This document shows positions 1-6,235 of a DNA stretch of 41,588 bases, piece after piece. The translations under genes and the position numbers were made by a program. The notes under the pieces were generated by a model. It was not told where the DNA came from. It did no database searches and was given only the letters and a program-made list of their open reading frames with translations. The stretch lies in assembly GCA_965644295.1 (NCBI GenBank), contig CBFFRP010000420.1:1-41588 (forward strand), read 5' to 3'. How positions within the stretch are numbered: position 1 is the stretch's first letter; the number at the start of each line of letters is the position of its first letter. This stretch comes from Paraphysomonas bandaiensis. Lineage: Eukaryota; Protista; Chrysophyceae.

Positions 1-119
1 CATAGACGGGACTATCACCTCCATGGTGCAATTTTCCTTAGAGACTTTGCCCGGTACGTTGAGCTGACTTAAGCTTCTTGGACTACAATTCCGAAGATTT
101 TCAGTCAGAGCTCTTCCCG

Positions 120-173
<54 letters not shown>

Positions 174-216
174 TATATGCTTAAATTCAGCGGGTAATCT
201 TGACTGATTGGAGGTC
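1..216 (-). rRNA. 28S (LSU) rRNA, 5' end, continues off the left edge
   Basis: ITS4-primer-like site TCCTCCGCTTAGTTATATGC at 161-180; reverse complement reads GACCTCCAATCAG...ACCCGCTGAATTTAAGCAT, the conserved LSU 5' end. Confidence 0.97.
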
Positions 217-420
217 CGAACGGATACTCACCGGGGCTCCTTTTACGCTAGAGATGATGAAAGCGCGGTGCTTCAGAACCATAAGGTACCTGTCACGTCG
301 CGCCACCTAACTCAAGCAGAGCAGGGGGCGAGTTCGGATTAGTGTCTCATCTAAGCACATTGACTGGCAAAGCCAAAGGCCGACCCAGCTAAGCCAACAA
401 GGATTAACTGTGGGGATGAA
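217..420 (-). other. ITS2
   Basis: Lies between 5.8S and 28S; boundaries approximate. Confidence 0.85.
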
Positions 421-575
421 CGACACTCTCAGCCAGACATACTCCCGAGTAACCGGAAGTGCAAGTTGCGTTCAAAATTTTGATGACTCACTAAGATTTG
501 CAATTCGCATTACGTATCGCATTTCGCTGCGTTCTTCATCGTTGTGGGAGCCAAGACGTCCGTTTGCTGAAAGTG
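421..575 (-). rRNA. 5.8S rRNA
   Basis: Reverse complement contains GGCTCCCACAACGATGAAGAACGCAGCGAAATGCGATACGTAATGCGAATTGCA and TTTGAACGCA (stramenopile-type 5.8S). Confidence 0.96.
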
Positions 576-791
576 GACTTAACGTTACTTCATATTCTCT
601 TCCAGACCAAAGCCTTTCGAGTACAATGAGTTTCACGGTCAGGATAGTTGATCATCACACTTCTAGGAAGTGGATAAAATGTTGTTGGGCTCTCACTCTT
701 CGGCCGAAACCGAAAAGGATTGCCAAAATAGTTTAGTTCACGGGTCATACCAAGTAACTCCCGAAGGAGTCACAAGGCAGTTGAGGTGTGG
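576..791 (-). other. ITS1
   Basis: Lies between the 18S 3' end (GGATCATTA) and 5.8S. Confidence 0.85.
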
Positions 792-838
<47 letters not shown>

Positions 839-943
839 ACCTTCCTCTAAATGATGAGGTTTAAACAACTTTCCACAGTTCGGTTGCCCGAAAGCATCCG
901 ATCCGCGGTCCGAAATTTTCACCGAACCATTCAATCGGTAGGT

Positions 944-977
<34 letters not shown>

Positions 978-978
978 A

Positions 979-1021
<43 letters not shown>

Positions 1022-1149
1022 CAAGATTCGCAGAATTGCAAAAATCTATCCCTAATACGATACACATTTACAAGATTACCCAGGACCTTTCGGACAAGGT
1101 GGACTCGTTGCGTGTATCATTGTAGCGCGCGTGCGGCCCAGGACATCTA
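792..1149 (-). rRNA. 18S (SSU) rRNA, 3' ~360 nt only, 5'-truncated at a transposon junction
   Basis: TGATCCTTCCGCAGGTTCACCTAC, GGGCGGTGTGTACAAAGGGCAGGGAC and GTGCGGCCCAGGACATCTA are present; the expected continuation AGGGCATCACAGACC is absent after 1149. Confidence 0.96.
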
Positions 1150-1274
1150 CACTACGAATTGTTCTTATCAAATAAGGTTTGGTACTCATTATTATTGTTT
1201 GTTATAAAATGAATCAACAGGAACCACACATCTATGAGTTTTCGGAGGAAGAATCCTTCAGAGAGGAGTTTCAG
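1150..1274 (+). repeat. Left TIR of the MULE
   Basis: Inverted match to 5479-5605; the outermost ~20 nt align weakly. Confidence 0.8.
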
Positions 1275-1674
1275 GAAAGGGGAAATGCGAGAGTTGTGAT
1301 TTCTCTCATAACAGGGGAATCTTTGGAGGAAGAACCCCTCAAGGAAGAGTCAGAGGAAAGGGGAGATTCTTCCATTAGTAAGTTTCCTATACTACGATTT
1401 AAATCTAACTATATATGCATGTTTCAAAGAAGAATCCACTGATAAGAAAAGGAAAAGAGACGCGGTGGAGAGCGAAAGCTCATCCTCCTCATCCGAGCCA
1501 TCCAAGGAGGACCCCCTAAATAAATTCGTCATATGCACACACTGTAAAAATAAAGTCTACGCAACGCCCTATAGTAGCAGAGTAGGCATTTTTTTCTCGT
1601 GTAGCTGTAAGCCTCGCAACGGGAAAGGCGAGAATGCACGCTTCTTCAGGCGAGATACCTCCGAGAGAGCATAA
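1209..1674 (+). CDS. MULE accessory protein (~137 aa): acidic N-terminus, KKRKR NLS, C-terminal CxxC...CxC zinc-finger-like segment; exons 1209-1377, 1430-1674
   Basis: A GTAAG...CTAAC...AAG intron (1378-1429) joins the two ORF-track pieces in frame: MNQQEPHIYEFSEEESFREEFQ...KESTDKKRKRDAVES...CTHCKNK...FFSCSCK...FFRRD. Confidence 0.65.
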
Positions 1675-2721
1675 TGGAAAATGCTGATCACTATTCTATG
1701 TAATTGAGAGTTCAGTGAATCACCTTATCTGAAATAAAAGTGACTCGTAATACGAAGCATCATTTACTCAATAAACATAAGAGGTCCCAATCTAAATTCC
1801 ATTACACTATATATCTCTTTACTTAGCAATATGTATGTCATGCCTTTCGATAGTTGATAAATGTCTCACTTAAAACACATTCATTATAGTTCTACAATAT
1901 AAAAATTGTAACATTTGCTCCAATGCCCCCCCCTATGCCCCCTGTCTGTGTGGCTGTGTATCTCCATTTGTTCCTATGTCTGCATGAATCACCTCATTCA
2001 TCAACCTAGTCACCGTATCTACATAAGTTGTGTTCCTAGTGCTTTAAATTTGCACAAAACATACACAGGTTTACACCCCCATCTCACGTAGAATATGTGG
2101 TATAGTAATCATGTGTGGGTCACACAATTATTGTGTGGGTAATATATAATATATATATAGTTAGGGCTTGGTTGCTGGCCACGCACAAGAGATACACATG
2201 TGTTGGGTTCTGCAGTATGATGTGATACCTATTGTGCAATTAAAGTGAGTTAATAGTATGCACTACAGGTAAAATCTACCCATAGTTTACTTTAATATAG
2301 CGGGTATATATAGTTATAAAGAAAGTAAATTCAGGTACTGATGTGTGACTATATAAGATTTAGGTTATTGACAGTGAACATATTATGATAAACAGATAGA
2401 TATTAATGGTAACAGATGTTTTCCAGATGCTACATGAATATGATGTGAAGTGTTCATATAAATAATTATAATTATTTCTTGAAAATACGTTATGTGTGCA
2501 ACTAAGCAAGTTTAAGGTTTACGTCTAGAACAAAAAGTCAACTTCAGTACGAGTTATTATACTCCAACAACATCATATATGCATTGCATAATAAAATAAG
2601 TAGTAAAATAACCAAAATCAATCTATTTACATATTTTCCAACATTTTCCAACAATATAATAATGCTACAATTTACGTTAATGATACATATATATACAGTA
2701 GTACGATATGTATAGCTAGCC

Positions 2722-5538
2722 CTAATAGCCTTGTCTCGCCTTTCGACTCTTGTCCTTATTTCTAACAGGGGCATTACAGCAAACTTCACCTACCTCTGGG
2801 CTGTTGTTGTGGTGGACAGACACGCTATTTTCACTCTCCAATACATTTTTCCACTTGTCACCAACCAAAGACGAAATGTATGACCGCATGTGTCTCATTT
2901 CTGATCGCGCGTATACAACAGCCAACCAATGACGACAAGGTACAAGCCACCGTCCACTGTAGCCGCAGGTGCAGGATATCTTGTACTTTCCATTGGACAT
3001 GCACTGTGTTCTAACTCGCCTTGGCATTGATGTCCACAGATCGTCAGTGGTTTTTCTGTGAAATGGATCCAGAGTTACTTCGAATTCATCTCCTGATTCT
3101 ATCACGGCCACGTCATACCTGATGAGTTAGGGTCAGAGAAATTTGTAAAAAGCTAGGTAATTATAATTACGCACTTACTTTTGTGATAATAGAGCTTGTC
3201 TCTCAATTCGTAGATAGACTGGCCTATACAATTGACTCTCCAAACGCATGACATCTGGTAGCAATACTAGATGGGTGGTGAGTTTATTCAACGCGCTTTT
3301 CTCATTTTGCATGTGCAATTTTTTCTGGTGGTTACTGAGTTTCAGTAATTCATTTCCCAAATCGACCAATGTCGTCGCATGTGTAGTTCTAGTTGCCAAT
3401 ATTGAATTGATGCTTTCATTTCGTTGGGATGAATGCCAACCAAATGTTGGTAACTCCTCTATCAGTATATATCTATGTACAAATCTCGGCCATATGGAGC
3501 GTAATGTGTTCACCCAAGGGATTCGGCAGTGCAATGGATCAGCGGAGACAGGGTGAGGGTCACGTAGAGAAGTAGTAGTAGCAGGGAGAGGAACATCAGT
3601 GCAGACAACAGCAGGCACAGAGGCACAGTACACCTGGTAATTTTTGGTACACACATTACATCTACATAAATTCATGTTTGCATCTTTCCTCGTATTAGTA
3701 ATAGTAATTCGGTTCATTATGTTGCTGTTGATTGCGTCATTTATTTTCCCCACAATTACTGTCCACTGTTGATCAGCTCTGTCTCCAACTGAACGAATAC
3801 AATCAATTTTGCAAAAGCGCCAGAGCATATTGATAACTTCATCTACATCTTCGCTTTTCAAATGACGGCGTAAGTGCTTAGGACCATTCCGGTCAATTAC
3901 ATGCCATTCACAAAATAGGTGTCTGGTAGTTTGACCATTAATAGAAGTACTGGTCTCAAAATCTTCATACGCTGGAAGCGTATATCCTTGTATCGCATGG
4001 TTCACACGGTCAATCAACACATCTTTGGCCCCAGAAACTTGGACCCCATAAGCTACTAAGATTTGTTTGAGCTCCTTAATAGTTAGAATACTCGGCTGTG
4101 CAATAAATTCTTGTATGAGGATTTCAACATTGGAAGGTAGAGAGGGGTGACTACTATCCACAGAACCAGACGAACCAGCATCGCACGCATTTTTGTCGCT
4201 CTTCAGTGCCCGGCAACATTCTCTAAAACCTTGGGCCATGTGGGGATCCTGGTCTGTCATTAATATCTTAGCAAACCGGTTGCCGCATATCTCATAATAG
4301 CACGTCCACACAAATTTAAAGCTGCGCACCGTCGAATAGAGTTGCAGAACGTGGCCTAACATGAAAGTCTTATCATGTGCATCTACTCCAGTAAACGTTC
4401 CCACCTTATAACCGTATTTAGTTACATCATGGCTGTCGTCATAACCATGAACATCATGCCAACCTCTCGCCATCGAAATTTCCCAAGAATATGCAAACAC
4501 AGCAGTAGTCACATATCCGTTCCCATTTCCCTCGCTAGTCTCGCATTTGAAGTAATTCTTCGGATCACTTCTAATTTCACGAATGAAGGCTTGTGTGTCC
4601 TCAGACATCACACGATCATATCCAGTCAAACGAATTATTCGTATATAAAGTGAATGCTCCGTGATTTCGTTTAGTGCTATAATTGAACTATTTGTTGATG
4701 ACATAGCCATTAAAGATTCCATAAGCTCTCTCCGATTATACTGGTTTGTTCTAAATAGTTTTATAGCATGATCCCAAAACGATTCCACGTCATGATGACT
4801 ATATGTGGCAAGTTCTACTTGAGGGGACGAGGTGAGATCATGGTTATGGTCACACTCCGGAAAGGCAATAATATACACCCCTGGATTTACAACAACTGAG
4901 TTATGATTATCGTCCTCGTAGTGGATCGTCTTCAGGACATTCACACAAGTCAGGGATACTTGACAGCCTGTAAGTTTTGTTGTAGTTCTTTTCACAGGTA
5001 CATGCAGCTCAGTTTCTTTGGATTTGTAGTTACCACTCCTTTCACATAACAATTTAAAAGTATTGGAGTCATAATCAAGATTGTTCTTCTTGAACTATAG
5101 TATGTATGTGACAATGAGTAATATATTTGACTATTATTAATTGCACCTTCACTCCACGAGGATATCCAATCACATTTACATTCGTCAAACAATCAGCCAT
5201 ATCTTTCTTTTTCTCACTCGCATCGTAAATATTGATAGCTCGCTCCAAAATCGGCACACCAACAAAGATGGTCAACCATCCCGGCGTTCCTGTTGGGTTG
5301 AATATTTTCTTTATCGTAGCAATCTGCGGGCCACGCTTCCTTTTATTCCCAGACACTGATTGCTCTAAAACATATACATAACAACAACCATATATATCAA
5401 TTATTTTTTACCTTCGGAAACAGATACATCAGCAGCAGTTTCCGGAATCGCATCTCTCTCATCACTCTTCTGCTCCCACTGAAACTCTTCTCTGAAGGAT
5501 TCTTCCTCCAAATATTCCTCTATGATCTCCTGATTCAT
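2722..5538 (-). CDS. MULE/FAR1-type transposase (~885 aa); exons 5538-5412, 5364-5147, 5094-3179, 3118-2722
   Basis: FAR1/WRKY-GCM1-like CER...GC...HNH; MULE core YDDSH...GVDAH...MTDQD; HLFCEWH (CxxH); SSQRNES (catalytic E); SWIM finger CTC...PCRH; three GT-AG introns (47, 52, 60 nt) restore one frame. Confidence 0.9.
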
Positions 5539-5605
5539 TCTTTATATATCAGTCACAATAATAATGAGTAACAAACCTTATTTCATATGAGCTATCATAT
5601 CAGTG
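5479..5605 (-). repeat. Right TIR of the MULE, contains the transposase ATG
   Basis: Inverted match to 1150-1274. Confidence 0.8.
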
Positions 5606-6235
5606 TATATGGACTGATATAAGGTAACACTTGAATTGGACTGATTACATGAATGTATATATATGTAGCTAGAGTAGTATATGTCCTGTTCTAGGTGCTG
5701 TATATGATTGTGTAGTGTATGGAGTATACATATGTGTACTCTGCTGTATATATGGTAGAGTGTGAGACAGTGTGAAATCAAGTAATCGAAATGTTGGAGT
5801 AGGAAGATTCATTTTTTTACGTATTTCACGGTATTACTGGTATTACGTTTCCAGGTCAGATTCCATTCCCTGGTTTCCTGTACGCCACCCGACAGTGTAT
5901 GGTGTATTGTAGACATCACGTATAATACAGCAGTATACTTGAGAAGATATGGACATCTAGGTAACCCGTATAACCGGGTATACCGGTACACTGCGGTATG
6001 TATGTGGCCTCTCTCCGTGCGTCCACAGCCCAGCCTGCTGTGTGTCCATATATCCAGGCAGTTAGATATGGAACATGCATCAGCTCAGGGTAAAGAGCAA
6101 AGCCGTGTTCTAGAAATATCACTAGTATTCAGGGATAGATAACTGCCTTAACACTTTGACAATGCATAAAAATAACTCATAAGGCTCTATTGATGCATCA
6201 ATGAGGGGTCTTTCATTCAGTGGAATTTATAGGCA

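Follow-up and report, generated by a model that had tools for sequence, protein, structure and literature searches.

How does a transposon that encodes its own transposase come by a second gene, and can the ends of the element supply its beginning? This question is raised by a Mutator-like element (MULE) at positions 1150-5890 of a 41,588-nucleotide stretch of DNA from Paraphysomonas bandaiensis (contig CBFFRP010000420.1, positions 1 to 41,588; the whole stretch is called the window below). A first-pass annotation of this DNA had claimed that the inverted repeats of the element supply the ATG and the N-terminal codons of two convergent genes, and an end-to-end alignment bears the claim out: the inverted homology spans the ATG and the first ~20 codons of two convergent frames, the left one encoding the peptide MNQQEPHIYEFSEEESFREEFQ and the right one MNQEIIEEYLEEESFREEFQ. 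Whereas the extra genes of MULEs are usually assumed to have been captured from the host, the leader, the ATG, and the first codons of this accessory gene are an inverted copy of the transposase's own. On balance, we find it somewhat probable that this is an autonomous two-gene MULE with an inverted start block at both ends, which would make both a transposase and an accessory protein.

The left end of the window copy is broken, so this copy is immobile and unfit as a reference. A search of the whole genome (62.5 Mb, 669 contigs) yielded one further full copy, on contig C134, that is 99.56% identical to the window copy. The C134 copy is intact: it is 5,031 bp long, carries the 8-bp direct repeat CCTAAGCC as a target site duplication (TSD) on both sides, and starts with GGGTGGCGTACAGG... 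at both tips. Its full inverted repeat extends over ~431 bp at 84% identity with indels (BLAST E 6e-109) and is built of three parts.

Positions 1-181 from the tip, both ends: terminal inverted repeat (TIR), 100% identical between the ends.
About 85-100 nt, both ends: spacer, non-homologous, microsatellite-like on the left.
About 165 nt, both ends: inner inverted block, 80-93% identical (about 85%).

The 181-bp repeat is presumably the end that the transposase binds and cleaves. The inner block comprises ~100 nt of leader, the ATG, and ~20 codons, with the two ATGs 366 and 353 nt from the tips, and its homology stops exactly after ...GAGTTTCAG (...EEFQ), at window positions 1274 and 5479. Homology between the window copy and the C134 copy runs from window 1144-1150 through 5890, which sets the right tip of the element at 5890, and the outer 300 bp of the left end (the perfect TIR and the spacer) are missing from the window copy. 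Positions 1150 and 5605, which had been taken for the termini, are therefore not termini; 1150 is a break point, and 5605 is roughly where the right inner block passes into the spacer. The window retains these pieces of the two ends.

1150-1274, plus strand: remnant of the left inner block, with 59 nt of leader, the ATG at 1209, and 22 codons (from the end-to-end alignment and homology to the C134 copy).
5479-5640, minus strand: right inner inverted block, comprising leader, ATG, and 20 codons; its identity to the left block of the intact copy is 80-93%.
5641-5709, no strand: right spacer, 30-43% identical to the left spacer in the end-to-end alignment and non-homologous to it.
5710-5890, minus strand: right TIR proper, 181 bp; the left tip of the intact copy matches it at 100%.

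From the left block remnant, the plus strand reads into a small gene that we model as 137 amino acids with one predicted intron.

1209-1377, plus strand: small gene exon 1, 56 codons and 1 nt, acidic, with two copies of an EEES/PxxEE motif; open frame.
1378-1429, plus strand: small gene intron, 52 nt, phase 1, GTAAGT...CTAAC...AG with CTAAC resembling a branch site, predicted.
1430-1674, plus strand: small gene exon 2, with KKRKR, a Ser/Glu-rich stretch, and a CX2C-X18-CXC tail; stop codon at 1672-1674, otherwise stop-free.

The frame of exon 2 is open for 120 codons in AT-rich DNA, and the next 1 kb contains no open reading frame (ORF) longer than 60 amino acids. With Pfam, the Cys-containing tail matches Zn_ribbon_recom (PF13408) below threshold, at 16.7 bits against a cut-off of 25.3; a zinc ribbon is suggested by the CX2C-X18-CXC spacing and a predicted beta-hairpin, though solely at the level of the fold class. 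A single-sequence AF2 model of the small protein has a predicted local distance difference test score (pLDDT) of 63.6, with the beta-hairpin at residues 33-61 at ~78. A GRF-type zinc finger was also considered and set aside, as it found no Pfam support even at E <= 10. The product would most likely be a nuclear, zinc-binding accessory factor.

On the minus strand, the right end reads into the transposase gene, modeled as 885 amino acids in four exons with predicted GT-AG introns of 47, 52, and 60 nt.

5412-5538, minus strand: transposase exon 1, with the ATG at 5538 and the first 20 codons (5479-5538) within the right inner block.
5365-5411, minus strand: transposase intron 1, 47 nt, phase 1, predicted.
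5147-5364, minus strand: transposase exon 2, beginning ...NKRKRG; stop-free.
5095-5146, minus strand: transposase intron 2, 52 nt, phase 0, predicted.
3179-5094, minus strand: transposase exon 3, a FAR1/WRKY-like C...C...HNH part followed by the MULE DDE core with a SAP insert.
3119-3178, minus strand: transposase intron 3, 60 nt, phase 2, predicted.
2722-3118, minus strand: transposase exon 4, with a SWIM-type CxC...CxH at 2905-3009 and the stop codon at 2722-2724.

All searches and folds used the exon pieces one by one, never the joined spliced protein. Among these transposase pieces, Pfam called SAP (E 7.6e-7), and the direct matches to MULE (PF10551; E 0.052, 14.4 bits against a cut-off of 27.6) and to SWIM (E 0.0033, 17.4 bits against a cut-off of 19.6, with CxC...CxH visible) stayed below threshold. 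FAR1 was not called by Pfam, and the C...C...HNH columns line up with those of relatives in which FAR1 does score. A HMMER/phmmer search of 1.84 billion representative proteins returned only 36 relatives at E <= 1e-3 (2e-25 to 1e-3). The ten that were scanned carry Pfam MULE, FAR1, SWIM, or ZSWIM RNaseH-like domains, with MULE scoring up to 105 bits, and D219, D281, and the glutamate of QRxE in the transposase align with relatives; comparison of the N-terminal exon with these relatives gave no significant match. The SAP domain (3991-4086, minus strand) lies within a ~95-residue insert that separates the second catalytic Asp from the CxxH motif and that all eight aligned relatives lack. Ahead of the catalytic Glu, the SAP insert is followed by a second lineage-specific one, containing CRCNVC. 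All of the relatives are on contigs of <=4.1 kb, and no related locus with DNA context was found in viral, genome, or metagenome contigs. Two ENA entries (P0001 and P0002) were considered as transcript evidence and rejected: both stop where the unspliced frame does, after ...LLSQK, which marks them as ORF calls made on unspliced DNA that are uninformative on splicing.

To place the element, we used the marks of the Mutator superfamily, namely a MURA-homologous DDE transposase, a TSD of 8-11 bp, and TIRs that are often long (100-600 bp). The element shows DDE homology through its relatives, an 8-bp TSD at two independent insertions, and inverted repeats of 181 bp and ~431 bp, and it therefore belongs to the Mutator superfamily.

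How old is the shared start, and how far does it reach? The left end carries two stretches that bear on this.

1236-1286, plus strand: 51-nt in-frame segment YEFSEEESFREEFQERG, found in the active lineage only, including a block near-identical to transposase exon 1.
1308-1350, plus strand: older copy of the shared motif, ESLEEEPLKEES, 81% identical to 5484-5526 (inverted pair I3) and in the same frame as the transposase motif.

In a four-way alignment, two relics of the family, on contigs C72 and C253, lack the 51-nt segment at the same position. The segment is thus a lineage-specific addition whose high identity stems from a recent event and not from conservation over a long time; its source may have been a tandem duplication in the left end itself or a conversion for which the right end served as template. 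The first-pass annotation had singled out EEESFREEFQ as one of the best-conserved blocks of the TIRs. It is indeed near-identical between the ends, but on the left it belongs to this lineage-specific addition, which the two relics lack. The motif at 1308-1350, on the other hand, aligns with the single motif of both relics, and the C72 relic reads ATGAATCAG..., followed by EEESFREE in frame. Since the C72 relic carries both the ATG and the motif, the shared start pre-dates the divergence of these copies and is ancestral.

Beyond the block, the resemblance between the two genes is at chance level. Past its end, the Smith-Waterman score is 19, against 17.7 +/- 2.3 for shuffled sequences, and 306 of 1000 shuffles reach 19; the regions around the introns and KRKR of the two genes gave P = 0.31 and 0.87. 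A predicted phase-1 intron followed by KRKR is present in both genes, as had been pointed out (GT-AG introns of 52 and 47 nt, KKRKR and NKRKR, no stops), but it carries no signal of homology: local and anchored alignments are both at chance level, so the common intron phase (a 1-in-3 coincidence) and KRKR are not evidence of shared descent. The proposed origin of the accessory gene in an inverted duplication of the transposase 5' end is therefore supported for the leader, the ATG, and ~20 codons only, and not for the intron or KRKR.

The other members of the family are few. The window and C134 copies differ by five substitutions, one 1-nt indel, and one 15-nt in-frame indel, none of them in the small gene, and their identity suggests that the element was probably active recently. 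A 2.75-kb non-autonomous derivative on contig C298 (L069 471-3218) has the 8-bp TSD TGGGTCTA and unrelated internal DNA; its tips are 99% identical to each other, and one of them has a ~16-nt internal deletion. The relics available for comparison are those on C253 (85% identical) and C72 (77-89%), with fragments on C284 and C398. The C253 relic is dead: its start codon now reads AGG in place of ATG, it has acquired one TAA, and rearrangement has turned its 3' part into a palindrome. Those on C72 (L070 ~1700-2150) and C284 (L071 1810-1913) are small, foldback-like relics with two facing inner blocks at 77-92% identity. The C398 fragment (L059 1496-1804; G000:C398:40724-41027) contains element positions 1-305 only, at 97% identity, and is joined to other DNA with a ~28-nt tandem repeat. 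It breaks within <=5 nt of the start of the window copy (element position 301), which could mark a hot spot for breakage or the missing half of a broken copy.

Because the intact and truncated copies are identical in the small gene, selection on this gene could be assessed against one relic only, that on C253. Over the 68 codons compared in exon 2, we count 12 synonymous and 13 non-synonymous changes, a ratio of non-synonymous to synonymous proportions (pN/pS) of 0.29, with the differences distributed 9/2/14 over the three codon positions. In 20,000 simulations with a fixed number of changes and transition/transversion mix, only 1.5% reach the observed synonymous count (P 0.015). The relic retains the four Cys residues and KKRKR, its coding indels (51, 6, and 3 nt) are all in frame, and 49 of the 52 intron positions are kept, including the donor, CTAAC, and the acceptor. 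We take this as moderate evidence that the small gene has been under modest purifying selection along the active lineage. The first-pass annotation had suggested comparing dN/dS among family copies and had asked whether the left ORF is frameshifted and neutrally evolving in them. The former suggests modest constraint in exon 2 of the small gene but no signal in exon 1; as to the latter, the coding indels of the relic are in frame and exon 2 shows signs of constraint, but the relic has lost the ATG and gained a TAA.

These findings suggest to us the following scheme. Each end consists of the 181-bp repeat, a variable spacer, and a ~165-bp inverted block, which would act as an "expression module" that supplies a leader, an ATG, and ~20 codons encoding an acidic peptide. 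Transcription would start within each end and read inward, as in maize MuDR, one end giving the 885-residue FAR1-MULE(SAP)-SWIM transposase after splicing and the opposite end giving a 137-residue, zinc-ribbon-like accessory protein that may be imported into the nucleus. An acidic peptide of one kind (EExLEEESFREE) would open both proteins. An inverted duplication of the module would have preceded the divergence of the known relics, and the left copy would later have gained its 51-nt in-frame motif copy. As the duplication reaches through the leader and the ATG into coding sequence, both proteins would start from one cassette with a similar acidic peptide.

Several observations weigh against a two-gene element of this kind. 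P0040 is the only relative that covers the transposase over its full length; its N-terminus is unrelated and it lacks the SAP insert, so the two-gene layout may be confined to this single lineage. No homologue of the small protein was found in the genome outside the element family, in a word search of 5.8 billion proteins, or in the PDB, where a sequence search gave nothing below E 0.3; Foldseek comparison of its model with the PDB gave no match at E <= 0.001, no Pfam family scored above threshold, and Sgf11, a lead from the Atlas (score 0.85), was rejected as under the useful range. Exon 1, where it can be aligned, yields no signal of selection against the C253 relic (P = 0.33), and the selection test as a whole consists of one decayed relic and 25 substitutions. 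The C298 derivative has the inner block at a single end only. The transcription starts are presumed by analogy with MuDR, and both first introns are predicted from the DNA sequence.

Some of these points are what would be expected if the small ORF were a by-product, that is, if the repeat had grown inward with the leader and start of the transposase and the copied promoter and ATG simply read into far-end DNA, giving an ORF without a function for the element. There is a precedent in Galileo, in which a 69-bp piece of an ORF is found in the opposite TIR (PMC4168063), and the lack of a homologue, the absence of a selection signal in exon 1, the lost ATG and gained stop of the relic, and the end of two-gene homology after ~20 codons all agree with such an origin. 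We nevertheless consider it unlikely, given the pN/pS of exon 2 and its third-position bias, the in-frame coding indels, the retention of the four Cys residues and KKRKR, the long open frame of exon 2 in AT-rich DNA, and intron signals that are intact and conserved. Alternatively, the inner block may be kept as DNA or RNA, for example as a subterminal binding site or as a promoter-proximal or translation-control element, in which case the likeness of the two peptides would be incidental and without a role. The 100 nt upstream of the ATGs are 87-93% identical between the ends, at least as much as the coding part, and the motif copies differ both synonymously and non-synonymously with no clear pattern; moreover, MULE TIRs contain binding sites and promoters (PMC3310237; PMC10401008). 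Against this, both genes read the motif in one frame even though its distance from the ATG differs by 36 nt between them, and the extra motif copy of the small gene is an in-frame addition. The C298 derivative, with one block and a clean TSD, also indicates that the block is probably unneeded at both ends for movement. We therefore regard a role confined to DNA or RNA as distinctly improbable.

The two-gene element with an inverted start block at both ends thus remains the reading we prefer. A further-reaching idea, which we put forward only tentatively and would not expect to hold, is that the inner block is a portable "start module" of promoter-proximal leader, ATG, and acidic tag that was copied to the far end, where it seeded a second gene and linked the two proteins by a common N-terminal peptide. 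If this were true, the module could serve co-regulation, binding of a shared partner, or dosage coupling, with exchange between the ends keeping the copies alike, and the small zinc-ribbon protein would represent a new class of MULE accessory protein, derived in part from the transposase 5' end and not by host capture.

What remains of the locus concerns the surroundings of the element and the DNA between its genes. The window copy is dead, left-truncated, and fused to 18S ribosomal DNA (rDNA).

1-1149, minus strand: rDNA flank, with the 5' end of the large subunit (LSU) rRNA gene at 1-217, 5.8S at 423-575, and ~350 nt of the 3' part of 18S at 800-1149 (Rfam matches).
2198-2552, no strand: dispersed repeat, ~350 bp, unrelated to the element, between the two 3' ends in both element copies.

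The contig begins within an rDNA unit, and the left edge of the window copy is fused at 1149/1150 to the 3' part of the 18S rRNA gene, which is cut at 1149, around model position 1450. The junction crosses a microhomology, CAT.TA (5-6 nt), and its element side is an internal position of the transposon. Native 18S on contig C196 reads on as ...CATCTAAGGGCATC past the point where the 18S of the window stops, and the remaining rDNA copies align with the window only as far as 1149. The junction is either a genuine edge of the rDNA array or a chimeric join. An 18S rRNA fragment at G000:C196:105300-106200 lies outside the recognized rDNA contigs and adjoins apparent coding sequence.

The stop codons of the two genes are 1,047 nt apart, and the dispersed repeat lies between them. 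It has >40 matches in the genome at ~77% identity, many of them in same-strand pairs ~3.83 kb apart; the one such pair that was checked has no long ORF between its members, and the pairs look like the long terminal repeats of non-autonomous elements. The genome also houses a second MULE family, 2,561 bp long with an open frame of ~612 amino acids (L046 3216-5776 and at least 6 more loci, on C134, C360, C363 (two), C457, and C192). At least 5 of its copies share 99.96-100% identity, and the family appears to have moved in the very recent past. Long TIRs and a second gene were detected neither in this family nor with a 974-residue ORF on C461.

How does the element compare with known systems? 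The transposase appears to have the domain order of the FAR1/FHY3-Jittery type, with C...C...HNH, a DDE MULE core, and a C-terminal SWIM-like motif, and its relatives carry these Pfam domains; unlike that type, it is very divergent, and SAP and a second Cys-containing stretch are inserted in its core. Accessory ORFs besides the transposase are known from Mutyl (mutB, Yarrowia), Hiun/VANDAL21 (vanB and vanC, Arabidopsis), and PMD MULEs (antisense ORFs), and they are usually assumed to be host-derived (PMC6446971). The present element likewise has an accessory ORF. The TIRs of those MULEs, in contrast, are short (22 bp in Mutyl), and the 5' end of the accessory gene here is an inverted copy of that of the transposase. 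A review of MULE diversity reports no accessory ORF that starts in a TIR or shares transposase sequence (PMC6446971), and a lexical search of the literature, which is weak evidence of absence, found no TIR-borne start codon common to two genes. With Galileo (PMC4168063), the element has in common that internal coding sequence was recruited into inverted repeats, so that a piece of an ORF is found inverted at the far end. Galileo, however, belongs to another superfamily (P), its piece comes from the ORF's 3' end, and a second gene starting there has not been described.

The case is a narrow one, a single lineage represented by one intact and one truncated copy together with one non-autonomous derivative, all known from sequence. 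Within it, the element is a two-gene MULE of compact build from a stramenopile, probably active in recent times, and it would illustrate a route by which inward growth of a TIR can give rise to a second gene and tie its expression to that of the transposase. The closest parallel is maize MuDR, whose TIR holds a promoter and alternative transcription starts and whose 5' untranslated region continues into internal sequence (bioRxiv 10.1101/2020.01.09.900282). Of the two-gene design that the first-pass annotation had likened to MuDR, the sequence shows the gene order, the convergent orientation, and the starts within the inverted repeat. Like MuDR, this is an autonomous MULE with long TIRs and two convergent, here presumably transcribed, genes, and its second protein is small and without a known domain. 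We know of no N-terminal peptide common to MURA and MURB. In MuDR, the ATGs lie outside the ~215-bp TIR, whereas here the 431-bp repeat holds the ATG and ~20 codons of both genes, and the layout is thus a modest architectural variant of the known MuDR-type two-gene MULE.

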